Source of the DNA: Lepidodermella squamata
Taxonomy: Eukaryota; Animalia; Gastrotricha
Assembly: GCA_047495785.1 (NCBI GenBank)
Contig: JBLDXI010000013.1
Span: 2,914,001-2,978,000, forward strand
DNA length: 64,000 bases
Direction of reading: 5' to 3'
Positions within the stretch are counted from its first letter, which is position 1; each line of letters opens with the position of its first letter. Made by a program: the position numbers and the translations under genes. Of the stretch, positions 46,492 to 63,963 are shown piece by piece. The notes beneath the pieces are model-generated. The model had not been told where the DNA came from and searched no databases. It saw nothing but the letters and a program-made list of their open reading frames with translations.

Positions 46492-47634
46492 TCACGCCAT
46501 TGTTAAATGCCGTTGTTGGGCGAAGTCCATAGACAAGGCGAATGGCCTATTTGAAACAACTAATAAGTCATTCGAGTGCCGCCGTTCGGTTCTTTCATCG
46601 TGGAAACTCGACGATGAATCTTCCTCATCGCATAGCCATGGGCTAACAATTTGAGGGCTAGCATTGCGGGCTCGATCGATCGGTGAGGCATTCACATGCT
46701 GGCGGTCTTCCAACCTATGCACAATGTTCGATTGATTGTGGTCTGGCGTGCAGTATATTGCCGGCGGAGACGGGGAGATGACTCTATTACGTTTTTTAGA
46801 ATATTTCGAGTAGATTACGTAGAAGAAAGTGACGCCGATAACTATTGCCACAACACCGGCTACAACTGTTCCGATGATGATTGCCGTTAAATTAAACTGC
46901 CGCTGATTATTTGGCTTGGCTGGGGTGGTTATCGAAGATATTTGATCGACATCATCAGTGCAATATTCGCAATAATAATAATTAGTATTGCGATTTTCCG
47001 ATAATTTTTCATTTGCTGCTGAGAGCAAATCGATTGAGCCGGATCTTCCTGAATTTGAAATTGAATCTTTTGAAGAAGGCGCGGGTTGAACTGCTGGTCG
47101 AAGAATCGCCGATTTTTGAGCAAGATTAAATCCGCGACGATTACGTGCTACAACACGACTACCAGCTTCCGAACAAAATCGCCAAGCTGCCGATGGTTTG
47201 AGGCTAAGTTTAAATTGAATGCCAGTTTTACGGTGGAATGCGACGTTTGAAAATTCCAAGTCATTTTTAGTCACATGTAGGCTTTTAGGTGAATCATTGA
47301 ACTCAAAACCGGGACAGCATTGTTTGAAGTTCAGCAAATTTTCTAGGCAGAAGCCAATCAATTCATCGGCAACGATTCGCTTCAGTGACCTCCGAATTAT
47401 CAAAAATTCGATTATGGTCAAATTCATTTGAAAGCCAATCTTTCGCGGGCAATTTTCCAGAGCGCCGATGCATTTTCGACTTATTAGATTGCCGTCGTTG
47501 CTAATAGCCAATTGGATGCCAGTTCCGCACGTGACTGAGCATGGCGACCATTTTTCTTTGCGCCGGAACCTTTTGAAGCTTTCGACCTGGCTCGCGAGGG
47601 TATATACGACCAAAATTGCGCTGAGGATATTCAT
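46492..47634 (-). CDS. Type-I membrane protein, array member A (shortest and most diverged)
   Basis: Signal peptide, WSPCSVTCGTG, NFKQCCPGF, RNRR site and a TM helix. Confidence 0.8.
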   Translation of the reverse strand: MNILSAILVVYTLASQVESFKRFRRKEKWSPCSVTCGTGIQLAISNDGNLISRKCIGALENCPRKIGFQMNLTIIEFLIIRRSLKRIVADELIGFCLENLLNFKQCCPGFEFNDSPKSLHVTKNDLEFSNVAFHRKTGIQFKLSLKPSAAWRFCSEAGSRVVARNRRGFNLAQKSAILRPAVQPAPSSKDSISNSGRSGSIDLLSAANEKLSENRNTNYYYCEYCTDDVDQISSITTPAKPNNQRQFNLTAIIIGTVVAGVVAIVIGVTFFYVIYSKYSKKRNRVISPSPPAIYCTPDHNQSNIVHRLEDRQHVNASPIDRARNASPQIVSPWLCDEEDSSSSFHDERTERRHSNDLLVVSNRPFALSMDFAQQRHLTMA

Positions 47635-48119
47635 CGTATTCGTAAAAGGTAATTCTATAAATTGAATTTAATATTCACTCGAAGCTCCAGCGAAAAACGG
47701 CTCGTGGGTTACCTTTTTTCAAACGAAAACAATCAACAAACCAAAAACACGCAGTAAATAATCATAAAATATTCCTCCGTTATCCTGAAGGCGGAAAATC
47801 TAGCTTAAAAAAAATTCAAAAAATATAAACAAACAGCGTTGTTTTCGAATGCCCATATAAATATTTATATTATGCAATTGTATAAAAAAAGGCAAGACAA
47901 TATCTCATTTCAAAATCGATTAATTTTATTAGATCGAACGTTTGATAGGCAAGTGGCTTATAGGTAACGCAAAAATAATAAAAATTTATAAAATAATAAT
48001 CGGCTATAAAAAATTGCAAAATTTGTAATTTTATCTGTAAAACATAATAATAGAAAAAAATGATCATTTGCGAGGGTTTTTTAAGCTTGTTTTTAGCCTC
48101 TATATCGGGTCAAACAACT

Positions 48120-50182
48120 CTAATATCGACGAGAAGGATCGTTGTACTTAAGTCCTGGGAGCTGCTTATTAGCGCCATTAATATGCGGTAGGCTAAGGTG
48201 CCGCGAACCTTGATAAGGGGGTTGTAGTTTGGCGTAGGACGTCGGAATAGGGGGCTGGGCGGCGTCGATCGATGCTCGTATAGTACTGCGATTGTTAGCC
48301 GCCTGCGAGATCGCCATGTCCGCCTTATGGTTTTTGTTGTTTTCAAAGTAATTCATGCTATTAGCCCCCACACCGCCCTGGGGTTTGCGTACAGATTCTG
48401 CGGAGTTATCTGAACAATGAAAAAAATGATGTTGAAGGACAAAACGTAGGTTGAATGAACAAGCTTACTCCCTGAAATAGGTTCTAACTCCGAGTTGATT
48501 TTGTTGTTTTTGTTTTTCACGCAGTTTGGGTAGATTGTGAAGTAAAACGCTACGCCAAGAATGATAAGAACGACAAATGCAGAAACTGAACCAGCTATAA
48601 TAGCTACTTTGTTCTCTTCCACAAATGTTGAGGCGCTCGATGAAGATGAGGACGAAGATGACGTTGCATCTTCACTCGCGCAGGGACTCTTTGTAGGTAG
48701 GCAAGAAGAGAAAACCCAGTTTTCTCCAGTTTCAGCACTAAGAGCCGCTATAATCTCCTGATCACTCATCACTGATTGGAAATCAGTTTGGCTGATCGAT
48801 GTCGCAGTGTCTCGTTTTTTGCGGCCACCGCTTGCTGTTCCACCTGCCTGGCAGAACTTGGTCGACGTTTCCCTGTTCACCATTAAAGTAGTCCTGAAGC
48901 AACAACCATTTTCCCGTTTGGAAGTATTCGCATAGTTTGAGTCGATTATATCGACGCTTTCAGCATAAGAGACACTCGGCGTTGATTTGAACGTGTAACC
49001 CGGGCAGCATTTTGTGAAATTCCCTGAGCTACTTTTACACATTTTTGTCAACTTGGTAGCAACAGCTCTTTTGATACTATTCCGCTGAGAAAGGTACTTG
49101 TCAATTGTAGGAACTGGCGAGAACAGTAAATCAACCCCATAAGCCTGTTCCTCAGCAGTTGGCGGGCATTTGGGATAGGAATAGGACGAGCAGGATTGGG
49201 ACGAGTAAGTTCCATCGCTATTCAGCCGCCATTGAATTCCAATACCGCATGTTGTAGAGCAGCTTGACCAGCTGTTGGGCATGACATTAGTGTTCGAAAG
49301 CAACCAAGCGGCTAGGTATTTATCTCCTGTTGGGAGTAGATCACTCGTCAGCGATAGATCAGCCAGGGCTTTGACAGTGGAAGCTCCGCTTGAGTTGGAT
49401 GATTTCAGCGAGCTGCTTGTTGTCGTTGCATTGGAGGAGGAATTTGATGACTGAACTGTTGCATTGGTAGCAGTTAACGCTGCTGTTGTTGCAGCGACGT
49501 TCGCATTTTGAGCAGCTGCAGTTGCAGAATTTCCAACATTCCCAGAAGTTGCAACAGTGTTACTCGAGGCAACTGTGACTTTCGTGGTCGCAGACGCAGC
49601 TGGAGTAGGACTAGTTGAAGCATTCCCTGCCGCTGTAGTTGATTGATATCCATTGCTGACGGTAGTAGTAGTCCTAGTGGTTGAACTAACCGTTGTTGTA
49701 ACTGCTGCATTACTCGTCGCGGTAACTGCTGTTACACTTTTCGTCACTATCGATGAGATAGACACCGTCGAGCTAGTAGGGGGGCCAGTCTGAGTTCCGC
49801 CAACTGTCGTTGTCGCCGGCGAACTGTCATCTAAGTTATTACATGGATTAATTGTGGCCAAAGTTGGGTTGCTTGTGGGAACAGTAATGACTGTCTGGGG
49901 TAGAATGCCTCCGGCGGCATTCGTAGTTCCTGCAGCGATCGCTGGAGATGTGTTCACTCCTACGTTTGTGTTGGGTATCTGAACTGTTGTAGGCGTGGCG
50001 ACCGTGACCACAGTAGCGTCAGAATTGGTTCCAAGAGGATTATAAGTTGAGATTTCTAGGCCTATTCCAGCGATGACTCCTTGAAGTTGGCAAGCTAAAC
50101 AAAAGAGGAATTCGGTTTTAGATTTACGGAGAAAGGAAGTCATCTTACCTAAGCTTGCTATCAGGAAAGACAGGACCTTCAT
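48120..50182 (-). CDS. Type-I membrane protein, array member B (mucin-like stalk); 3 exons
   Basis: S/T/A-rich region, WSSCSTTCGIG, CCPGY, GCCFR, RKKR and TM. Intron 48468-48410 joins the 48120-48371 ORF as the cytoplasmic tail. Confidence 0.85.
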
Positions 50183-50432
50183 TTTATTTTCTCATGGACA
50201 TGTAAAAAACTCATAAATGCCACGTTTACCAATTCATGAACAACGGAACGAAAATACCACGGGACTACTGGTGCACTCAATATTTAATACCCACTCAATC
50301 AAATTAAACTATTTTCCGCTGCCATTCGATGTTTCCAGCAACCCTAATACATGTCTGTTACCATGGTTGGTCATGCATAAAAGATATTGTGATTGCTAGC
50401 CAACAAATTTTATTTCAAAACCAATGTTAATA

Positions 50433-51926
50433 TCAGAGAATGACTCTAGTTGGGATCTTCCCTGGGTGATGAATTTGGCGGCGTATAGCATCAGAAATAG
50501 CTCGATCGCTGTAAATTGCCATAGCCTTGTCAGATAATACGTCATTGAAATGCGAGCCAACTGCAGTTTGAGAATGTCGTTCCATCACCGGGCGAACTCT
50601 GTTCTTCTTACAGTAGGCCGGGTAAAGATAGAAGTAGAAAAACAAGAAGAAGATCAAAGAAACAATCGCAATTGAGCAAACGCTAGCAATGATCGCAGCT
50701 TTGTTCCTTTCAAAATAGGAACCTCCGTCTGAAGACCTAGACGATTGTTCACGGTCTTCGCTGAGACACGGATACTCCTGGGGCATGCATGACGAGAATG
50801 CCCATGTCTCTCCAGTTTCAGCTGTTATCGCTGCGTTTAGATCAGGATCCGCAGCAGAGGACATCAAATCCGCTTGACTCATTGTAACATAAGACGATTG
50901 TCGCTTCCGCCTAGTAGTAGAAGCGCCACTTGCTGCTTTGCAAAATCGGCTTGTCGCCGACCTGCTGAGCATGATTGTTACTCTGAAGCAGCACCCATTC
51001 GGTCTTAACGATGTATTCGCAAAATTTGAATCCATAACATCATCGGGGCTGACATAGGACATTGCTGGAACGTATTTCAAAGAGTAACCGGGGCAACACT
51101 TTGTGAAATTCGTTCTGCTGCCAAGGCATTGCTTATTCAGCTTCTCAGCTAGAAGGCTTTTCATTGTTTTTCTATGCTCAAAGTAATCCTCCAAAGAAGG
51201 AACAGGATTGATGAGCCAATCGACGCCAAAGGACTTTTCAAGGTCGCTGGGAGGGCACTTTGGTGAGCTGAAGGAACTGCATGACTGGTGTTCTAATGAG
51301 CCATCTGACAATCGTCGCCATTGTACTCCGAGGCCGCAAGTCGAGGAGCAAGATGACCAAGTCGTTGCCATCAGGTTGATATTGGAGGCCAGAAACTTCG
51401 ATAAATATCTATCGCCATCTGATAGATCTTTATCCGTCAGCCATGAAAAATTCGCAAAGTAGTCCGGATCGGTTTCGGCTGACATTACACCAATTAGAGG
51501 AGCAAAACCAACAAAGCTAGCCAGGAAGTTTGATTTTACCGGCGAACTAACAGAGCTGGTTGTCGAATTCGGAGTGCGAACTGTCGTTGTGCTGACACTG
51601 TTCAGGTAGGCGTTGTAAAATTCAAGGCTTCTATTGTTCGAAGTCGTCCAGTTGTACCAACGCCCAACAGTAAGATTGAAGTTCACGAGTAGGCTACCGA
51701 TATTAGTAAAATTAGAAATGCCAGACCATTCAGCACTGGACAAAAACTCCATTAGCTCCGATACCGTTTTGTTCGTCCAAAAAGAAATCGAAAGCTTGCT
51801 CATAATGGAAGTAGGGGTCGACGTCTGTTGGCTGGATATTGTGGCGCCGTTCAGCAGAGCTTGATCTAATTGCATTGCGATGGATATTGATATACCAACT
51901 AAAAGAAATTGTCTGGAAATTCTCAT
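50433..51926 (-). CDS. Type-I membrane protein, array member C
   Basis: Signal peptide, N-terminus rich in N-glycosylation sequons, shared module with RRKR, and TM. Confidence 0.85.
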   Translation of the reverse strand: MRISRQFLLVGISISIAMQLDQALLNGATISSQQTSTPTSIMSKLSISFWTNKTVSELMEFLSSAEWSGISNFTNIGSLLVNFNLTVGRWYNWTTSNNRSLEFYNAYLNSVSTTTVRTPNSTTSSVSSPVKSNFLASFVGFAPLIGVMSAETDPDYFANFSWLTDKDLSDGDRYLSKFLASNINLMATTWSSCSSTCGLGVQWRRLSDGSLEHQSCSSFSSPKCPPSDLEKSFGVDWLINPVPSLEDYFEHRKTMKSLLAEKLNKQCLGSRTNFTKCCPGYSLKYVPAMSYVSPDDVMDSNFANTSLRPNGCCFRVTIMLSRSATSRFCKAASGASTTRRKRQSSYVTMSQADLMSSAADPDLNAAITAETGETWAFSSCMPQEYPCLSEDREQSSRSSDGGSYFERNKAAIIASVCSIAIVSLIFFLFFYFYLYPAYCKKNRVRPVMERHSQTAVGSHFNDVLSDKAMAIYSDRAISDAIRRQIHHPGKIPTRVIL

Positions 51927-52204
51927 TTTTTTAGGTGATCGCCCCCATAACATTGGCAAACAAAAAACGATTCCTCGCCCGCTCTATACACCACCGTGTT
52001 TTCATTAATTATTCATAATTTGACAAGTGCGCGACCTCCCGAATCCCCATTTGAATATCAAAAACTGCAACGAAAACAATTTTATTCCAGCAAAAACATG
52101 AACTGTCGGGGTTGGTGACGTCACAAGAAACAAAGGCGGGGTTCCAGCGGGGTCAAATTTACAGAATTATTAGTCAGTAATAGAGTGATGTGACGTCAAA
52201 CACG

Positions 52205-54552
52205 TCAAACACGGCGATTCGGCTCATTCTGAAACAGGACCTTTCGCGTGGCCTGGAGCATAGCCGCATCTAGATAAGGATTTTTCTGAGTGCCATCCCA
52301 TTGCCCCAAGTTTGTACCGACAGGTGTTTGAGGGCGCCGAGACTCATCAACTGCCGCCACCCCATTCACCTTATTATCTTGTTGTTTACATTTAGGATAA
52401 ACGCAAAATATAGTTATCAGAATGGCTACAAGCAAAACCAGGCCGCCAATGCTGGCCCCAACTATTAGACCGATGTTGCTACCACCTTCTGAGCTCGAGT
52501 CACTGTTGGTGCCATTGCCTGTCTGGCCGGACTTTGAACCGCCTGAAACTGATACAACATCTTCACTAGTGCACGGGTTGGTTTGGGGTAGACACGATGA
52601 GAACAGCAATGGCTCTCCGATTTCAGCCAACATCATCGACCAAAGTTCAGAGTCCGCCATATAGGATGCTAGATCACTTTGAGCCATAACCCCAACATCT
52701 GCAGCACGTTTACGACGTTTTTTCGCGGTCTGAGCCGCCGTTCCGCCAGCTGCGCAATATTTTTGCGTGGCGACTTTGCTAATTAGATAAGTCGTTCTGA
52801 AGCAGCAACCATTCGCCTTTTTCGAGGTGTTTGCGTAGTTTGAATCGATTACGTCATCTTCTAGCAGGTACGAGAAAGTAGGCTGTTGCTTGAATGTATA
52901 CCCCGGGCAGCATTTTGTGTAGTTTGCCTTACAAGCCGTGCTCAGTTTCTGGGCAACATTTTTCTTGATGATCCTTCTCATAGAAAAATATTTGTCGAGA
53001 GTTGGAACTGGTGACCAAAGTAGATCAACTCCACAGGTTTGCTCTTCAACGGTCGCTTGGCATCGGGTTGGATTGTCGCATTGTTGATACTCCTTACTGC
53101 CATCGTCTTTCAAGCGCCATTGAACACCCATTCCACAAGTTTGAGAGCAGCTTGACCAAATGTTTTTTGATAACGAGGCAACAGGTGGCGCCATCTTTAG
53201 CAGATATCGATCACCTGCAGATACAGCATCAGATGATGATTTCGAAAGAGCGACCAGGGTAGAAACCATTGCGGCTTTGATTGATGCCGTTGTTCCGCTC
53301 TCCGAAGCTCTCTGTGTCGTGCTGGCTCCTGATTGGCTATCCTCGCTACCTGATTTAGAGCCACTAGCAGCTTTTGTACTTGCCTCTTCGTTGACCTTGG
53401 CAGCTGTCGACGCTGCTCTTTGAGTGGTTGAAACGTCACTACCACGAGTACTTGACGTCGACACGTCGCCGGAATTTTTCGTCGTTGCGCTGTCCTGGCT
53501 AGCTGGTTTGGTTGTGGCGGATGGCGTGCTCGTTCCAGAGTTTGAACCTGCGACATTCTCAGAAGCGGCTTGGGATGTGTTTGTTACCGACGAGCCATAT
53601 TTCGGCGTTGTATTTGCCGAGCTATTCGTTACAGCCGATCCAGACCCGCTGGTGTTGCTGGCTCTCTGTGTACTAACAGCCGTACCAGCCGCTGAAGGCG
53701 TTGTGTTGTTCACTTGACCGCCGGATGAAGAATTTGTAGCTGAAGATCTTGTGGTTGATTGCCAGGCTGCGGGGGAAGTTGTTGAACCATTCGATGATTT
53801 CTGAGTCGCACCCGACGTAGAGGTAGCATTGACATTCGACTTCATCGTTGTAGTTGTTCCGCTGTTCACATTCGTAGTATTGGAAATGGTACCGGCCTGG
53901 GTTGTATTAGTCGCTATGCGCTGAGTGGTTACGCCATTGCTTACTGTCGACTGTGTCAGGTAGCTATTAACACCTTGCGTCACATTTGTCACTGCGCGTT
54001 GCGTTGAGGTTGCGAATCCACCAACCGTGGAATTGCCAGGCGTTCCACATGTCGCACATGTCGTTACGGGTCGACTTGTGGTTGAAACTGGGTCATTTTC
54101 AATTGGCTCGCAAGTTGTCATGTTGATTGGAGGGTACTTCGTGCAAGAAAAGTTCGTGCAAACATTGCTTCCCGTCGTGCAATTCGTCATGACGAATCTT
54201 TCAAACGCAATTGGGCAATACGAGATATTGATTCTATGGGAAAATAAGCATTCAGTTGCATTATTTGACGTCCATCGTGTGCAGTTGACAATGTCGTAAG
54301 TACAGCTTTCGTTCGTTGGCCAGTTGAGAAAACCGACACTTTGGTAGTAAACAACTGACGGTTTTGCTGATGTAGTGATCTGGCTATTTCCTGTGCTTCC
54401 GGCTATTGTAGTGTTTTCTGGTCTTCGCGTTGAAGTCGATTGGGGAAAAACTTGACTTGCCAATGTCAGGGCTACTACAAAAGTGATTAAATGAATTTAG
54501 TAAATTTTTTCAGCTGAAATGACTCACTTAATAGCACAGCTAGCATTGCCAT
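52205..54552 (-). CDS. Type-I membrane protein, array member D (Cys-rich N-domain plus mucin stalk); exon 1 54552-54528
   Basis: MAMLAVLLIALTLA after splicing, small Cys-rich domain, S/T stalk, shared module with KKRRKR, and TM. Confidence 0.85.
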
Positions 54553-55197
54553 CGATATCAAATGATTATAATCGCCTCAGTTCTGATTTTTATTTTCAAT
54601 TTCAAAGAACTCTAAATGTTTCAGCGCACGCAAGCAGAGTGCTCTTAAGCGCGGCTGTAGCAACGCTTTGAACTGTATACGTCAATATATTTTAGCTGCT
54701 TGGTTCCGCCACCAATATTCGATAACATTAGTTGAACGCATCGAACAAACTCTACACACCTCGACAGCATTTGAGTGTTGAATTATAAACGCGCTGTTCG
54801 AAAAATATGTTTGCCTCGACGGCAATAATAGCGTCATTACCGCTGATGGATGATAATTCACCTCCTACTTGTCGCGGTGAGTTGATGATGCGAACGTCAA
54901 TTCATTAAATTTTTATGATTTCAGGCTGCCATGTTTTGCTGCCAACTTTGAAAAACTCAAGAACCAACTTATTGAATTGAACAATCAAACGGAATGCAGA
55001 AACAAAGTGCTTTATTTTTATGCTCAAATGCTGAAAGCTGTACATATTAAGGTGGAACCGGGATAAATGTGCAAGACATCAAGCTTTTCCTTATAGTGAA
55101 CTATGAGAGACGGATGCACAATACTGAAGACAGTCACTGTCACTGGTTCACAAGGGGTGATAATCACTGACGACATCGATCATCACGAAATATTGTC

Positions 55198-58100
55198 TTA
55201 AAAGCGCCGGCCTGCTCTGTGGGCTTTTGGATCATGAACCGGGCGAAAAGGTGGCTGGGATGCCGCCATCGGAACCTGTTCTTTGGCTTGAGTCTCAGCT
55301 TGTGTTATAGCCCCATTCAACTGAGCATTCTTAGCATCAATCCACATCTTATCCATGTTTGAGCCAACAGCAGACTGCAATCTGCGCTCTTCAGACCGGT
55401 CGCTGTCGATCTGTGTCTTATTTTTTCTTTTCTTTATGAACTTGGGGTAGATGTAACAATTAAAGAAAACTATGAAAACAATGAGTAAAGCTGCGCCAAC
55501 ACAAGCGCCGACGATAATGCCAACTTTGCTCTGATCACTAGACGCCGATTTAGCAGTTGTGGCATCTGAACCAGAAGAACCGCCTGAAGCTGAGCCAGAA
55601 GCAGTGGCAGTGAAGCCATCTTCTGTGACGCACGGGTTAGTTTGGGGTAGACAAGTAGAGAACAACAAAGGTGCGCCTATCTCGGCAAGCATAATCGACA
55701 TGAGATCCGTGTCTCCCATGAACCATTCGAGATCAGATTGGGATATCGTTCCAAGAGAAGTTGCTCGTTTCCTTCTATTACTCGGTATCCCACCAGCCAT
55801 GCAAAATTTCTGGGTTGCGAATGAGCTCAAAGTAAACGTAACTCGAAAGCAGCAACCAGTAGAGCTCTTTGACGTATTAGCATAATTTGAATCGATGATA
55901 TCATCAATCGTAACGTATGATATAGTAGGTGCCTTCAGAAACGTATAGCCAGGGCAACATTTCGTGTAATTCGCAGCACTGCTTTTGCAAACCGATGTCA
56001 GTTTCGTGGCTATAGCCTTTTTAAACTTTAAGCGGTCACTGAAATAGGTATCAATCGTTAGGACCGGCTTTATTAAAAGATCACAGCCTGATTTCTGCTC
56101 TTCGAGAGTACTCTCGCATCTCGGCAATGAAGGGTTCGAGCACTGCTGATATTCCTTAGTGCCATTGTCTCTCAGTCGCCATTGAATACCAAGACCACAA
56201 GTTGTAGAGCATGATGACCAAGATCTGGTGCTCAAGTTGATGGTAGAACTAAGCCAAGTGGCTAGATAGCGATCACCAACGACCAGTTTATCCGCTGTTA
56301 GGCTTGAGCTGGCTAGATACCCGATATTGGCTACTCCGGCGCTCGCAATCGTCATTGCCTCTGCTTGATTAGTAACAACTGAGTTTACCGCTGTCGTGGC
56401 TTGTTGTTTAGTTGCTGAACCAGAAGAAGATGAACTAGGATTGTTGGAATTTGACTGTGTCGAAGACGCTTGATTGGCAGCAGTGGAAAGCGTTGAACTC
56501 GGATTATTAGAATTTGACTGCGTCGAAGACGCTTGATTTGCAGCAGTGGAAATCGCTGTAGAGGCTGTTGCAGCAGTCGGAGGAATGGAGCTTGATACAG
56601 CAGCTGCTTTTGTTGTCGCTGATGGTGATGTAGTTACTGCTGATTGAGCTGCGGTTGAAATCATTGAGTTCGAAGATGTTGAGCCAGATAAAGCAGTGTT
56701 TCCGGAACCAGCGGCGTTTCCGGAGTTCGAAGCAGTAGCGGCCTGCAACGGCGTCGTCATTGTACAATTCTGGTCAAAGCTAAAGGTGACATCATTCCAA
56801 CTCCAGCAGGGTCCAGTGAGATAGTTCGAGCTCCCTGTATCATTGGATGGACAAACGCTGTACCAGACCGGAGAATCAACAGACCAAGTGTAGCAGCCAT
56901 AGGTAGCAGGAGATGGCGTAGTCGCTACGTTATTCGTGCAGTTTTGCTGAAATTCCCAAAGCACATCGTCCCATTGCCAGCAAGGGCCGGAGTTATAGTA
57001 GGCACTTCCACCAGTTGCAGGACAGATATCTTCCCAGGTTGGAGAGCCCGTGTAAGCATTCCAGACATAACAGCCCCAAGTAACTGTTGAGGAATTGCTT
57101 GGTGGCGTCACAGTAAGAGCTCCCGTACAATTTTGCTCGAAACTCAAAGTGTACTGATTCCAAACCCAACAAGGCCCAGTCCAATAGTCTGAACTACCGA
57201 GGGCAGGGTCTGGACAAATGCTGAACCAGCTTGGGGTGTCGATGTACCAAGCAAAGCAGCCGCCCAAGTTGCTTGACGTCGAGTTACTGCAATTGTTGCT
57301 GAAATCTGAGGTGTTCTGATTCCATGCCCAGCACGGACCATTCCAATATTCATCGCTTCTCTCGGTAGAAATGCATGGATATTGCCAGAAAGGAGCCTGT
57401 GCGTTGGGATTCCAAGCGTAGCAACCGTAAATTGAAGAGCTTGAATTCGTGCAGTTTTGATCAAACTGCTGGGTGACGATGTTCCATTTCCAACATGGCC
57501 CTACCTGATAATCAGAGCTACCGCCAGAAATCGGGCATGGTGCATCCCAATTAGGTGCGCCAAGTTGGGCATTCCAAACGTAGCAACCAATCTGCAAAGA
57601 GTTTGAAGAGCAGTTGCTCTCGAATGCCCCTAACTCAGCTTTCCATTGCCAACATGGACCATTGAAGTAGTCATCGCTTCCATTTACCGGACAGGGTCTC
57701 TCCCAGTATGGCCGGCTTTCAAACGGATTCCATGCGAAACATCCCGGATCAGTCGCATTCGTACAGTTTTGTTCGAATTTTGAAATGGTGAAATTCCACG
57801 ACCAGCATGGGCCTTGGTAGACGTCATCACTGCTTTGATATTGCGGGCATGGATAGTTGTAAGTTGGTCCCCAAAACGTTGCATTCCACACGTAGCAGCC
57901 GTGCATAGTTGGAGCCGTGTAGTTGGTGCAATTCTGATCGAATTTCTGTAAGTCATAGTTCCAACTCCAACATGGGCCACTGTAATAGTTATCACTCCCG
58001 CCACTTTGAGGGCAATAACTGAACCAATTAGGACTGTTGTTTATTTCACTCCAAACGTAGCAGCCTGAGTAACTGCTCGTCGTTACTTCGCTGCAGTTTT

Positions 58101-58533
58101 GCATGAAATTACTTGTGATGTTGTCCCATGCCCAACACGGACCGTTGTAGTAGTTATCGCTGCCACCAGTTGAGGGGCAAGGATTTGTCCACGAAGGTGA
58201 ATATATGTCCCAGACGTAACAACCTGTGGTGTTCGTGCAATTTTGGATGTAGGAGTATGTGGTGTAGTTCCAGTGCCAACAGGGACCGTTATAGTAATCA
58301 AGACTACCCAGCGCGCTGTTACATGGTTCGTTCCATATTGGACCATTCCAACCTTGGTCCCATTGATAGCAGCCATTTGAAGTTACATTTGTAGAACCCT
58401 CTGTCGTAGTTGACTCTTGAAGTCTTACAGGACCAGCCAGCATCAAAGTCATCAATAAACCTGAATTAAGTCAACTTAATTTTATCAGCTAATATATATT
58501 TTCTCACTAACCTATAATTACTTCGGCAGTCAT
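55198..58533 (-). CDS. Type-I membrane protein, array member E (10 Trp/Cys repeats plus mucin stalk); exon 1 58533-58512
   Basis: Signal peptide after splicing, ten ~50-aa GC(Y/F)xW...C...GPCWxW...NC(T/S) repeats, shared module with RRKR, and TM. Confidence 0.88.
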
Positions 58534-58929
58534 TGCGCTTAGAATTATGACGATATTACCAAGTCAGGCATCTTCTTATGCTCGAATCATTGGTCGAGCA
58601 AATTTTCCGTCAGTAAAAGGATCAAAATTTACGAGACTGCACTCTCGTAAATCACTGCTCCGCCTGTATTTTCCCCGCCAAGCAACCTTAAGTATAAACA
58701 TGTCTCCTTTCACCCGTTCAATAATTCATAACTTTTAGCTTTTAAAATGTTATGGTGCTTTATTGTCCTTCTCATGATCAGTCAATAGATGTTCGAATGT
58801 TATTGTCAATCAAGGTTTGAGTTTGTGGGCGATACTGTGAGTTCATATCGCCCACGATCAAGGGAAAACAGACACCTCTTAAAGAGGGTGTTGATCCTAC
58901 GTCGAGCCTAAATCCGTCAAATGTACAAA

Positions 58930-59128
58930 TCGCGACTTCCGCGCCAGAACAGTGTGCCGGAAATAGAAACAAATCGCGTAAAACTAACTTTTTGCATCTT
59001 CGCCAAGTCAGTCCAGTCGCGTGCCTGATTGCTGGAAAAAAAGTTTAACGCCAGTTTTTTCTGCGCATCAAATACATTACGCCATTTGTTTCTATTTCCG
59101 GCACACTGTTCTGGCGCGGAAGTCGCGA
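58930..59128. mobile_element. MITE-like element with 45-bp perfect inverted repeats
   Basis: tcgcgacttccgcgccagaacagtgtgccggaaatagaaacaaat (58930-58974) and its exact reverse complement at 59084-59128. Confidence 0.75.
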
Positions 59129-59283
59129 AATAAAAAATCAGTCCTTGGAGGTGGCAAATTTATTGCATATACAACAGCCTAAGCAACAAAATGACAAAAT
59201 TCGAAGAATACAAAATTTTAAAATGTTTACTGCCGATAAATCAAATACATGAATCATAATCTGAAATGTTATGCTGTTTGGAG

Positions 59284-62010
59284 TTACACGTCTTGTATGA
59301 TGCTTCTGCTTTTAGAGGCCCGATCTCTAGAAAAAAGTATCTCGTCAGCTTGGGCCAAAACTTTCTGCAAGTATAATTCGGCCGTAGTTTTGTTCATTGT
59401 TGTACCAACTGCAGATTGTAAACGGCGCTCTCCCGATCGCTCGGTCTCCGGCTGAACCTGATTATGCTTCTTCTTTAGGTATTTCGGGTATACGTACAAA
59501 GCGAAGACAACGAAGAAAACGACTATTAAGATGGCACCATTGCACAAGCCAATGATAATGTTAGTGATATTGCCTGATTCAGCCGCAGCTGCATTCGATT
59601 CAGCGGAGTTGATCTTCGTCGTTCCTGATGATTGAGGTGCAAACCCGTCCTCTAACTCGCATGACTTAGTCTGCGGTAGACAGGTTGCGAAGGACAAAGG
59701 CGCGTCTATCTCTGCTAGCATCAGCGACAGAACGTCCGTTTCGTCCATAAACGACTTGAAGTCAGCCTGCGAAATTAGGGCCGAATCCGCCGCCCGCTTA
59801 CTCCTCACGTTGATCATCCCGCCAGCTTGGCAGAATCTCTGCGTTGCAATTTGGTTCAGCGTATAAGTCACTCGAAAGCAGCAACCTGGTGCGTTTTTCG
59901 ATGTGTTCGCGAAGTTTGAGTCAATGATGTCATCAATCGAGACGTATGGGATATTCGCTGGCTTTGAATACATGTAACCAGGGCAACATGTTGCAAAATT
60001 AGACGAGCTGCTTTCGCACATCCCTGTTAATTTCGTGGCGATAGCTTTCTTTATTTTCAGCCGATAGTTAAAGTAGGTGTCCAATGTAATGACAGGCTTT
60101 ATCAACAAATCGAAGCTCGATCTTCGTTCCCTAATTGTACTTCCACATCGAGGCGTATCTGGGTTCGAGCATTGTTGATACTCTTTGGTGCCGTTTTTTA
60201 TCATTCGCCATTGGATACCAAGACCGCATCTAGATGAGCATTTTGACCAAGCCCGGGACAAAGTCACAGCGGAGCTGAGCCAGGTAGAAAGATAGCGGTC
60301 GCCGACCACTAATTTCTCAGGAGTAAGAGTGGAATCTGCAAGCTCAAGCAGGTTTCTTGTTCCCGCGTTAGTCTCGGTAGAATTTCCGACTTTTGTGGAT
60401 GGATCTTTAACGTTATTAACTGTTGACGATTTTGCAGAGGTTGACAAAGTAGCTGCGCTGGTTGGAAGTACTGTTGATTTGACCGAAGCAGACGTTGACA
60501 TTACATGCAACATGGACAATGAGTTGAATGCTGTCGGTCGATTCGGTTCTGAATAAGGTGAACTGCTAGAAACAATGTTTGAAGCAGCGACCGTCGTCTT
60601 GATCGGAGTTGTTGATGAAAAACCATTCGGCTCAGAAGATTTTAACATCTGCGACAACGTTGTTTCAGCAGAAGAAGCTGAGATAGATTGGGAAACGGCA
60701 GAAGTCGAGGGCAGCTTTGACCAAGTTGTTGCCGATATTTCTCCGATGACAGTAGGCAGCAATTCAATAGGTGATGTATTCAACGTTGTTAATTGAGCCT
60801 CAAAATGAGGAGATGATGAGCTCGGAGCTGTATCGGCTGAAGTTTCGTAAGGGATTACCGTCGTAGTCTGATCCGAGGATATCTCACCATTTTGAGTTAT
60901 CCCTACATAGATTAATGATGCTGCGTCGGCTTTACTTTCAGAACCTGTGGACATTTCTAATCCCTTTGTTATTGAGCTTAGTTCAAACCCCAGACTAGAC
61001 GTTCCATTGGACAATGAACCTTCGTCCGATGAATATGATGTAGCGTAATCCAGTGTCGATGAAGCTTCCGTGATGATTGATGTTTCGTCAAGTATCGATT
61101 GATCTGACGTTTTGCTTAGCATTGTATCCGGACTGGTTTCATTCGCAGATGGATCCGTTGAAAAGCCAGTTTCCTCAATGGTTTGCTCTGGCGAACTGTC
61201 TGCTGCCACGTCGGTTGTAGTCTGCTCATTTGTGGCTTCCTTCAGCATTGATGTTAATATTGCTGGCACCGAAACTTCCTCCTCGATGGTAGAAGCACTG
61301 AGCTCTTCAACAGTTCCAGTGGATACCCTTGGGGCTGTTTCGGTGATAGTCTCTTGCGATGTCGGTGACGTGTATTGAAAATTAGACGAAATAAAAGTGA
61401 TTTCAAGTTCGGATTCGGTTGCGTCTGAAGTAGGGTAAGTATATCCATCCTGCACTGTTCCGAGGCTTGAAATGCTCGGCGTTGTCTCAATGGCTGAAAC
61501 TGTAGATTCCACTGCAGTCATCAAGGAGGTGCAATTCTGGTCGAAAGATGAGTTCGAAATCGCAATCCAACACGGACCATGAAGCAAGTCATCGCTGCCA
61601 CCAGCTGGAGGGCACGGTTCAACCAGCTCTGGACGATCGTTAGTGTCACTCCAAATCGCACAATTAGCTGGACAAGGGTCCCTCCAATACCATGAAGCTG
61701 CCGAGTTCCAGAGGAAACAACCAGTGTTAGCCAGCGTGATATTGAAGCATGAAGATATGTCATGCGTAGCAGTGTCGTTGTTCCAGACGTAACATAGTCC
61801 TATTTATTCATGCAATTTCATCTGAGGTTATTTGTACATGTTACTTTAGCTTTGCGGCTTACCGGAGTAGTAATCTAAAGTCCATTCATTTCTGACGCAT
61901 GTCTCTTGCCAAGATGGAGCGTTTGACTTGGGGCTCCATTGGAAGCACCCGTTTTGCGCTGATACCGACATTATAGTCGTTATCATCAAAAGGCTTGACA
62001 TATACAACAT
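59284..62010 (-). CDS. Type-I membrane protein, array member F (about 2-3 degenerate Trp/Cys repeats plus acidic mucin stalk); exons 62010-61863, 61799-59284
   Basis: MLYMSSLLMITTIMSVSAQNGCFQW... exon spliced through a GT-AG intron into the long ORF. Shared module with RSKR, and TM. Confidence 0.85.
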
Positions 62011-62449
62011 CTGTGCCATAGGTAGTTGTGTATGATTTCAATTTCTCTCTGGAGTATGTAACAAAACAAAACAATAGTCAAATCGCAATTGTCTCTCCGC
62101 CCAATAAACGCCGTTTGAAAAATTAATTGTCTGTGCTCCCACTCGTGCGCATTATATTATTATTCATCAACACTTTATGGGTGTGATCGTCCATTTTTTG
62201 TGATCAGAGTTCGATTAAGGTGCGTGGGGCAAGGCGGCACATGTGGGACGAAAGCGAACTCCCACGCATCCTCTTGGACTATCAATTTTTTGTGTTGTAT
62301 TTTTAGCCCTAATACTTATGGACGGACTGAAAAATAGTGAATTGTGGGTAAAAATCCACACGAGCGCTTGCGCAATCAAGGCGCGCGACTTTGCCAAAGG
62401 AATCAATCAATGAAATATAGATTTTTCGATTTAAGCCATTGAATAAACG

Positions 62450-63963
62450 ATGCAGCTTTATCTTGTGTTGATTGCCCTTATTTCAGGAGCGTTTGCCGAG
62501 AAAACACTCAAACAAGTTCGCCGTGAACTGCGAAAATTTAGCGAACTGCCTGAGGTTGGCCAAATTTATCGATTTCGAAGCGAACCTAACCAATGGGTGA
62601 CAGTTGCGCCTCATTCACTGCAGAATCTCTTCCTGTCCAAGATTTTCCTAATTTTCCCCCACGAAGCCGGAAGCTTTGAGTCGATTGTTTGGAAAAACGT
62701 CCTGGCAGTTGGTTTGAAGAAGGAGGTTCAATTTGCTGATGTTTTACTTCTTGATCGAGTTCCTCAAACTGGAAGCGCCGCTGTAGACTTGATTTACAAA
62801 TCGCTCCCTACTCGAGTCCCTGGGAGCGCAATTCACTGCATTGGGGTTGGCTTCGGCACTCGACTCTGCGCTATTCTCGGCAAACTGTTGCTCGACGAAC
62901 ATGGAGACGGTCTCGCTCGCATCACTGCCCTCGATCCAATGGGGAAAATGGAGGTGGAATTGGCAGGCAATGATGCGGATCTCAGAGCTCCTATCGACTT
63001 TGATCTAGTCGACGTCGCTGGTTTTGTCGATGCTTACCACACTTCGTTTTTAGGCACGAAAGACCTCGTAGGCGACGTCGATGTTTTCGTCAATTCAGCC
63101 ATCATTCAACCTGAATGCCTGCCCCTCAGCCTCGCGACTGAAATTATCAACGTTTGCCACGAAAGTCGCTTGAAATGCCCGCCGATGGACACGTTACACA
63201 GCTGCGCGTTTGGAAACAACTGCCCTAGGAGCCTGATTGATGAACTCGATGAAGCCGTCAGATCGGCCCCTAACTACGCTGCTCAGTATGATTCGCGCTA
63301 TTCGGAAGATATTTATCTGATGTTCCGGCCTTCGCAAGAGCGTGCGGCTCTGTTATTTGCATCCTCGCTGCAGCCTTACGTCAACTGCCCAGCTTGTAAA
63401 CCTAACCTCAACTACAAAATGTGCCCATGTGACGAAGCTACACTCCTAAGGGTAAGCTTATCACAACTAATAATAACCAAGTAGCTTCGCTCATTTTTCA
63501 GAAAATTTTGAAATTATTGAATCTATTTATTTTTAAGTGGGTATCGATTTTGTAGAGAATTGCGATTTTTGATTCCATGTAGGACGGACGCCGTTAATCC
63601 ATTAGCTCTAATCCAAAACAGTGTCTCTTAGCAGACCAAATTTTTTAGCTTGACAGAAACATCCTAATGCATCGTATTTTATCTTATATTTTCCTGATTT
63701 TTCTGACAAAAATCACGAAACCCGAAGAAACTTTTTTCCGCTAAAATCAAGCCTAAATCATTTCTAAGGCATTATTTTTGCTTCTTTTTTAGAATTACGA
63801 AGAATGTCCCAAGAAATGTGCCAAGCCAGAAAATTTCGGCATCAAGCTTCGTACTAATGCGACTGGAACCTTCCACGTCTCAACTTCCGGCTGGTGGCCC
63901 TACTTCGAATGCGTCACTGACGAAGACTTTGCAGTTCTCGACCCCAACGCCCGCCCAGTTTGA
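62450..63963 (+). CDS. Secreted pancreatic-lipase-family alpha/beta hydrolase, catalytically inactive; exons 62450-63451, 63793-63963
   Basis: Signal peptide. IHCIGVGFG in place of VHLIGHSLG, RITALDP, FVDAYHT, GDVDVFVN...QPEC. Last exon GTFHVSTSGWWPY resembles the end of the lipase domain. Confidence 0.8.

Follow-up and report, generated by a model that had tools for sequence, protein, structure and literature searches.

In the work presented here we analyzed a 64,000-nucleotide stretch of the genome of the gastrotrich Lepidodermella squamata (positions 2,914,001 to 2,978,000 of contig JBLDXI010000013.1; referred to as the window, whose own positions are used throughout), in which six co-oriented genes, termed A to F, form an array on the minus strand between positions 46492 and 62019. 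We see a somewhat better than even chance that this array encodes convertase-processed, two-chain type I transmembrane mucin-like receptors, built on a base that consists of a thrombospondin type 1 repeat (TSR) and a SEA/MAD-like domain. In such receptors a furin-type convertase would cut a loop with the motif R-x-K/R-R in the secretory pathway. The resulting outer chain would extend from a variable head through a mucin stalk and the TSR to the first half of the second domain. As the remainder of this domain, alpha2-beta4, belongs to a membrane stub together with the transmembrane helix and the tail, the stub would complete the fold and thereby retain the outer chain, as is the case for cleaved SEA domains and for the heterodimerization (HD) domain of Notch. 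A pulling force or a second protease would then release the ectodomain. A family of about 50 loci would thus share one base while varying in the head, which can consist of mucin alone, Cys domains, Trp/Cys repeats or EGF.

The C-terminal approximately 330 residues can be aligned across all six genes. They comprise an extracellular module of about 235 amino acids, a Ser-rich linker, a transmembrane helix and a short tail, with basic residues directly after the helix in a positive-inside arrangement. Open reading frames (ORFs) and alignment thereby bear out the initial annotation, which had described six co-oriented genes with a shared juxtamembrane module, Ser-rich linker and transmembrane segment. 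The motifs it listed are also present, namely WSxCSxTCGxGxQWR, CCPGY, IDSN(Y/F)ANTS, FC, R-x-K/R-R, SQxD, AExG, CLP and C..ED, as well as GD(K/R)YL and GCCFR, which are not found in gene A. Gene A is indeed the most diverged member, with 21-27% identity and a very long branch in the module tree; it lacks the GD(K/R)YL helix, and its diverged SEA-like domain has no CC pair in beta3, the GCCFR strand.

The second domain of the module is not recognized by existing family models. When the six genes and 24 aligned modules were compared to Pfam, no family matched this domain even at E-values of up to 10, and the SEA family (PF01390) gave no match in any of them within the same limit. An exhaustive profile search of 1.84 billion representative sequences returned nine matches at E-values of up to 1e-3, seven of which cover the TSR only and two of which cover the second domain. 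One of these two, P0005, is an uncharacterized protein of Lytechinus pictus with a mucin region, EGF, the second domain, an RRRR site and a transmembrane segment. The other one, P0003, comes from an animal assembly and combines EGF, TSR, the second domain, an RKRR site and a transmembrane segment, with VWD/EGF ORFs upstream. Comparison of the profiles by hhalign gave probabilities of 96.5% and 97.3% for the two, and the four core cysteines and the basic site are in register. Word searches starting from P0003 and P0005 yielded nothing beyond TSR proteins and a single close ortholog from a sea urchin, while the word-index protein search with the gene C module gave no matches. In the ESM Atlas, no usable match was obtained by features, and by shape only unrelated bacterial and viral clusters were found with TM-scores of 0.29 or less. 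In agreement with the presentation of these receptors as novel in the initial annotation, the module matched no well-characterized family over its full length.

The AlphaFold2 model of the module (mean predicted local distance difference test, pLDDT, 75; predicted template modeling score 0.70) contains a strand (residues 70-75), a long helix (80-104), a further helix (106-112), a hairpin (132-139/149-155), a short helix (157-167), the RRKR loop at 173-176, helices at 185-205 and a short strand near residue 210. The segment after the site, which contains SQxD, AExG and F-S-T-C-L-P, is modeled at pLDDT 73-84, and in P0003 and P0005 it likewise reads as a helix followed by a hydrophobic strand. 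When this model was compared by VIA-align to 48,161 PDB representatives, the top ranks were taken by membrane-adjacent (MAD) and SEA-type domains, nearly all of which span model residues 64-213 and thus straddle the site at 173-176. These matches include CELSR1 MAD (Z 8.5), PCDH15 MAD12/EL (Z 8.1 and 7.9), CDH23 MAD28 (Z 6.3), the mature ectodomain of IA-2 (Z 5.9; 85 of 89 residues at a root-mean-square deviation of 2.6), Gpr126 SEA and dystroglycan (both Z 5.2), MUC16 SEA (Z 4.8 and 4.2) and the Notch2 LNR-HD (Z 4.3). In a Foldseek search of the PDB only the TSR part scored, and the matches of the SEA-like part (ACE2 neck, dystroglycan and PCDH15) were weak and below significance. The predicted structure, with moderate Z values, is a beta-alpha-beta-beta-alpha-beta sandwich just outside the membrane, as in the SEA-like/MAD class. 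We read the modeled second domain as a SEA/MAD-like ferredoxin fold next to the membrane, and not as evidence for homology to any one of the matches.

The SEA profile PF01390 does find at least 23 other loci in the genome, none of them at the loci of this family. These canonical SEA matches lie in tandem clusters of 380-560-amino acid frames on contigs 30 (0.13-0.39 Mb), 50 (0.20-0.25 Mb), 60 (16-43 kb) and 24 (1.97-2.02 Mb). Expanded arrays of ordinary SEA-domain genes therefore exist apart from the family described here.

The putative cleavage site is among the few invariant features of the second domain. R-x-K/R-R is present in all 24 aligned close modules and occurs in gene A as RNRR. In an alignment of ten sequences, representing three subfamilies as well as P0003 and P0005, only six columns are invariant: four cysteines and R113 and R116 of the site. 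The loop which carries the site is modeled with the lowest confidence within the domain (pLDDT 60, compared to 93 and 84 in the adjoining blocks), and alignment gaps cluster in it. The predicted fold does not bury the site. R-x-K/R-R in a predicted accessible loop of a secretory-pathway protein has the form of a proprotein-convertase motif, and at least eight proprotein-convertase P domains are encoded in the genome. From the model we infer that the site lies within the fold, between beta3 (with the short helix) and alpha2-beta4. In MUC1, Notch2 and GPR126 alike, cleavage takes place in the beta2-beta3 loop (PMC6954182), and with the site predicted between beta3 and alpha2-beta4 this family would therefore use a different loop. 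For furin-cut SEA domains with fragments that stay associated there is precedent (PMC6954182). The proposal of the initial annotation, a SEA- or Notch-heterodimerization-like fold cleaved in a loop, holds in that Notch2 HD is among the structural matches and the site falls in a low-confidence loop; the loop is not, however, the one between beta2 and beta3. The G/SVVV autoproteolysis motif is absent, with neither GSVVV nor GSIVA in the sequences, and the predicted hairpin turn reads G-C-C-F-R instead (invariant G146, C147 and C148). When the module was divided at the site into residues 1-176 and 177-236, the complex prediction scored 0.00, with the alignment unused and the partner folded poorly, and provides no evidence either way.

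The distribution of cysteines bears on whether the two chains would be covalently linked. The cysteines of this domain in P0003 and P0005 are the four core ones only, all of them before the site. The close family has two further pairs, C147/C148 on the N-terminal and C214/C221 on the C-terminal side of the site. Cysteines after the site are lacking in the paralogs on contig 9 as well as in P0003 and P0005. As gene A has no pair of the C147/C148 type and nevertheless keeps two C-terminal cysteines, there is a weak preference for a local bond between C214 and C221, which would leave the two chains without a covalent link.

The N-terminal part of the module consists of a helix and a short TSR with four cysteines (C28, C32, C51 and C59) and one tryptophan. 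Pfam TSP1_CCN matches all 24 close modules and TSP_1 23 of them, in the latter case near the cut-off: genes A and E reach 23.3 and 22.7 bits against a cut-off of 21.6 bits, and B, C, D and F stay below it. The WSxCSxTCG core of the thrombospondin type 1 repeat (PF00090) is present; the canonical six-Cys, three-strand TSR with its Trp/Arg ladder was not found in the 24 close modules. By profile as well as by single-sequence search the best PDB match is the alpha-TSR of Plasmodium CSP (E about 6e-5), with an ungapped alignment over 39 residues that reaches back into the preceding helix, and Foldseek also places this domain first (probability 0.97, E 0.03). Like the module, CSP has a short four-Cys TSR with a preceding helix and a WSxCSxTCGxGxQxR core, which follows a repetitive region and lies near a membrane anchor. 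The similarity is, however, restricted to about 40 residues, mostly of the TSR core, and CSP is anchored by glycosylphosphatidylinositol and has no SEA-like domain. Since the relatives on contig 9 keep a canonical six-Cys TSR at the same position, the short TSR probably arose by reduction within this animal lineage. We reject an apicomplexan-type origin because of these sister genes with a canonical TSR at that position. W-x-x-C and C-x-x-T-C-x-x-G, the consensus motifs for C-mannosylation and POFUT2 O-fucosylation of TSRs, are kept. Two O-FucT-family loci are present in the genome, and the TSR is probably C-mannosylated and O-fucosylated.

Furthermore, the evidence that these are real and expressed genes was assessed. 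The ratio of nonsynonymous to synonymous substitutions (dN/dS) was calculated from close paralogs on contig 19; among the six genes of the window synonymous substitutions are saturated, which makes values for these unusable. In the contig-19 paralogs the ratio amounts to 0.07-0.10 in the TSR, in both halves of the second domain and in the loop between them, compared to 0.46 in the Ser-rich linker. The alignment of the 24 modules and the dN/dS values both place the segment after the putative cut site under constraint equal to that of the segment before it. The similarity among paralogs corresponds to E-values of 1e-30 to 1e-170. A sequencing run annotated only as 'RNA?' (X1) was taken as complementary DNA (cDNA) because of what appears to be the SMART cDNA oligo at its contig ends, and because of a spliced junction in gene B: an X1 contig breaks off at position 48409 and is continued by the reverse-complemented end of the upstream exon of gene B, which is the predicted junction. 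The X1 contigs span B, C and D; they are deepest on D and thinnest in the intergenic gap at 50.0-50.4 kb, contig depth being a rough guide only. On the basis of dN/dS, intact frames and cDNA coverage we reject pseudogenes or repeat-derived ORFs as an explanation. X1 and a further run (X2) differ from the window between 48001 and 54000 at many positions, for example by about a dozen listed substitutions across gene C, and X1 has a slightly different allele at the exon junction of gene B. This suggests appreciable strain or haplotype divergence in the surface genes of the array.

In the cytoplasmic tail, the motif R(R/K/H)xQxxVG reported earlier for five members is read directly in C, D, E and F. 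The tail of gene B is split by a 59-nucleotide intron (48410-48468), and the motif appears there only after removal of the intron, as RKPQGGVG. The family consensus is RRxx(S/T)xVG, followed in most paralogs by W-(D/E)-K-x-N-P-Y-(Y/F), which is NPxY/F-like; among the genes of the window, D keeps NPY and B has a degenerate form. These motifs look similar to a basophilic-kinase site and to a phosphotyrosine-binding domain or endocytosis signal, and would suggest phosphorylation-dependent signaling or endocytic sorting.

The coordinates of the six genes are collected in the table below. The N-terminal regions differ as described in the initial annotation. In gene A there is none, the stalk of gene B is a mucin with 49% Ser and Thr, and gene C has a region of about 150 amino acids that is N-glycosylated as judged from its sequence. 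The N-region of gene D is Cys-rich and continues into a mucin stalk with 48% Ser and Thr; an exon 1 with the start codon near 54550 and an intron of about 52 nucleotides (GTGAGT..TAG) give this gene a complete classical signal peptide. Gene E carries ten Trp/Cys repeats of about 52 amino acids with four cysteines each, at about 56719-58374; a 5' exon encoding its signal peptide was looked for and not located. In gene F, exon 1 (from about 62019) encodes the signal peptide and the first Trp/Cys repeat and is followed by an intron with a GTAAG donor, after which there is about one further, degenerate repeat (about two in all) and then a long mucin stalk. Over 100 amino acids, the Ser and Thr content reaches 44-49% in B, D, E and F and a weaker 38% in C, and A is without a stalk. 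B, D, E and F have the long Ser/Thr-rich stalk, the transmembrane helix and the short tail by which transmembrane mucins are defined. Just beyond gene F, a 344-amino acid ORF with a signal-peptide-like start lies on the plus strand at 62450-63484.

Table 1. Features of the six genes of the array, in window positions (TM, transmembrane helix).
Gene	Gene model	Long ORF	Strand	N-terminal features	Module	Putative cleavage site	TM	Tail
A	46492-47634	46492-47634	-	signal peptide straight into TSR motif (47524-47550)		RNRR 47134-47145	46807-46896	long tail
B	48121-50182	48353-50182	-	split signal peptide; mucin stalk	48668-49327	RKKR 48812-48823	48530-48607	
C	50433-51959	50433-51959	-	signal peptide	50754-51416	RRKR 50901-50912	50622-50699	motif 50556-50579
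D	52205-54552	52205-54463	-		52559-53215	RRKR 52706-52717	52397-52486	motif 52316-52339, then NPY
E	55198-58455	55198-58455	-	mucin stalk	55618-56277	RRKR 55765-55776	55447-55524	motif 55363-55386
F	59284-62019	59284-61587	-		59647-60303	RSKR 59794-59805	59488-59577	motif 59404-59427

When the 121-Mb genome was searched with the gene C module, at least 25 full paralogs were identified, chiefly in arrays on contigs 19, 18 and 13. With a broader profile of the second domain (A4), 53 matches were obtained, some of which lie in two contig-9 arrays and in a group on contig 73. The six genes of the window are one array within about 25 close paralogs and about 50 domain-bearing loci and do not form a self-contained family. 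The contig-9 genes are multi-exon and encode EGF-like domains, a canonical six-Cys TSR, the SEA-like domain with GRKRR or RRKRR, a mucin region and a transmembrane segment. In the arrays at 2.26-2.31 Mb and 3.30-3.34 Mb of contig 9 and at 0.21-0.23 Mb of contig 73 (L027-L030), a Cys-rich or EGF region precedes the canonical six-Cys TSR, the SEA-like domain with dibasic site, the mucin region and the transmembrane segment. This architecture, which is the same as that of P0003, is probably the older form of the base.

Among the close paralogs, the majority have plain mucin stalks. In the cluster at 2.84-2.88 Mb of contig 19 these are pure, with 47-52% Ser and Thr over the whole N-region and almost no Cys. 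Nine paralogs (L004, L007, L009, L012, L015, L016, L018, L024 and L025) share a Cys-containing N-terminal domain of about 100-150 amino acids with 30-60% identity. Pfam gave no match in this domain, in the N-regions of C and D or in the Trp/Cys repeats. The latter (about 52 amino acids, four Cys and three to four Trp; GCYxW..PxW..CP..GSD.Y..GPCWxW..F.QNC) are confined in the genome to E (ten copies) and F (about two, 61522-62000). The AlphaFold2 model of a two-repeat unit from E (pLDDT 55) consists of all-beta hairpins and is too poor for a fold search; the wealth of aromatic residues suggests a glycan-binding module. In the module tree E and F as well as B and C are sister pairs, and the other paralogs cluster by N-terminal type. 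Of the swapped N-termini postulated earlier, what stands is that the heads differ, and that the sisters B and C have unlike ones. Head types differ mainly between clades, with B and C as the exception, and are not freely swapped, and most paralogs have plain mucin stalks. In one copy, L023 (contig 18, 15990-19580), the reading frame shifts between TSR and second domain, and AGNPAT replaces the dibasic site. L023 adjoins reverse-transcriptase-like ORFs on the opposite strand; it is probably a pseudogene neighboring a retroelement.

In other receptors, a SEA-like domain and an adjacent N-terminal domain act together as a proteolytic switch (PMC6586460). By analogy, the closest functional counterparts of the array would be transmembrane mucins and such SEA-like proteolytic-switch receptors, the adjacent domain here being the TSR. 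Transmembrane mucins (MUC1, MUC3/12/13/17 and MUC16) are likewise type I proteins with a Ser/Thr-rich stalk, a membrane-proximal SEA-type alpha/beta sandwich that is split by proteolysis, as is predicted here for the array, and a short signaling tail. The genes of the array differ from them in having no Pfam SEA match and no GSVVV, in the predicted convertase cut in another loop and in the TSR before the domain. With the Notch negative regulatory region, whose heterodimer is non-covalent, they share a small Cys-rich domain beside a juxtamembrane SEA-like domain with a furin-type loop site. The array, however, is without Lin12-Notch repeats (LNR), an EGF ligand-binding region or a large intracellular domain and would use a different loop, and no Pfam Notch or LNR match was found in the six genes or the 24 modules. 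GPR126/ADGRG6 also has a SEA fold with an (R/K)-x-K-R furin site, and its fragments stay associated (PMC6954182). In contrast to the array, it is an adhesion G protein-coupled receptor whose SEA domain is located centrally in the ectodomain and is cut in the beta2-beta3 loop, and there is no sequence similarity. The best structural matches, PCDH15 MAD12, CDH23 MAD28 and CELSR1 MAD, are ferredoxin-like and stand directly before the transmembrane segment, packed on the preceding domain, but they have no convertase site, follow cadherin repeats and are only 5-15% identical. IA-2 (PTPRN), which aligned over nearly its full length, has a juxtamembrane SEA-like domain in a convertase-processed type I protein. 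Its convertase site lies upstream of the domain and not inside, and it has a phosphatase-like cytoplasmic domain.

Several observations weigh against two-chain receptors of the kind proposed. Z values of at most 8.5 are, according to the tool, in the range common for unrelated ferredoxin-like folds, and this fold is very frequent. The last approximately 25 residues of the module (CLP..C..ED) are modeled below pLDDT 50. The topological place of the site and the disulfide map are derived from the DSSP string, the alignment ranges and the co-occurrence of cysteines, and the predicted site lies in another loop than that of the known cleaved SEA domains. Most of the six genes of the window have lost the NPxY-like motif or keep a degenerate form of it. 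Finally, cleavage and chain association are computational predictions. A conserved dibasic site near the membrane and the plain mucin stalks of most paralogs would also suit membrane-anchored precursors from which cleavage frees the mucin or head into a surface coat, cuticle or adhesive secretion, leaving a stub without further role, and secreted coats or adhesives are plausible in a tiny aquatic animal. We nevertheless think this unlikely, as the segment after the site and the tail motifs are constrained as strongly as the rest of the module, and the modeled helices after the site are part of a fold through which the structural alignments run.

Disulfides between C147/C148 and C214/C221 would tie the chains together and preclude shedding, and cleavage would then serve maturation. 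That the close family, unlike its distant relatives, has two additional cysteines before the site and two after it is in line with such a disulfide-tethered receptor. The retention of the two C-terminal cysteines in gene A argues against it, although weakly, A being very diverged, as does the lack of post-site cysteines in the contig-9 paralogs, P0003 and P0005, and we judge this arrangement distinctly improbable. It is less probable still that the site stays uncleaved and that ordinary single-chain adhesion or glycocalyx proteins use the basic loop as a structural element or to bind glycosaminoglycans. Binding can be a reason for the conservation of basic patches, and cleavage is so far predicted only, but the exact R-x-(K/R)-R with a small P1' residue is kept within a loop whose flanking parts differ in length and sequence. 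This pattern holds across subfamilies and phyla and is lost in the frameshifted L023.

Convertase-processed two-chain receptors thus remain the explanation we prefer. As a tentative extension, to which we give a low probability, the pair of TSR and SEA-like domain might be an independently evolved, Notch-NRR-like force-gated proteolytic switch that serves as the base for about 50 receptors and is cut in a loop unused by known cleaved SEA domains. Pulled by a ligand, the outer chain would come away, and the stub would become accessible to further proteolysis or to signaling through the tail. More speculatively, the beta2-beta3 turn, where SEA domains cleave themselves at G/S, carries an invariant Gly-Cys-Cys that might be a second, autoproteolytic site.

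Overall, the array encodes members of a sequence family that has no Pfam model and almost no database relatives. Despite that, its predicted structure would place it in the class of cleavable juxtamembrane SEA-like domains, which are involved in mucin shedding, Notch activation, dystroglycan processing and tip-link mechanics, and would add to this class a new partner domain, the TSR, and a new predicted cut position. With about 220 amino acids the module is compact and suited to existing synthetic-Notch shedding assays. Judged by its distant sea-urchin relative, the second domain may predate this lineage, and in this little-studied invertebrate a whole receptor repertoire of about 50 loci would be built on one base.

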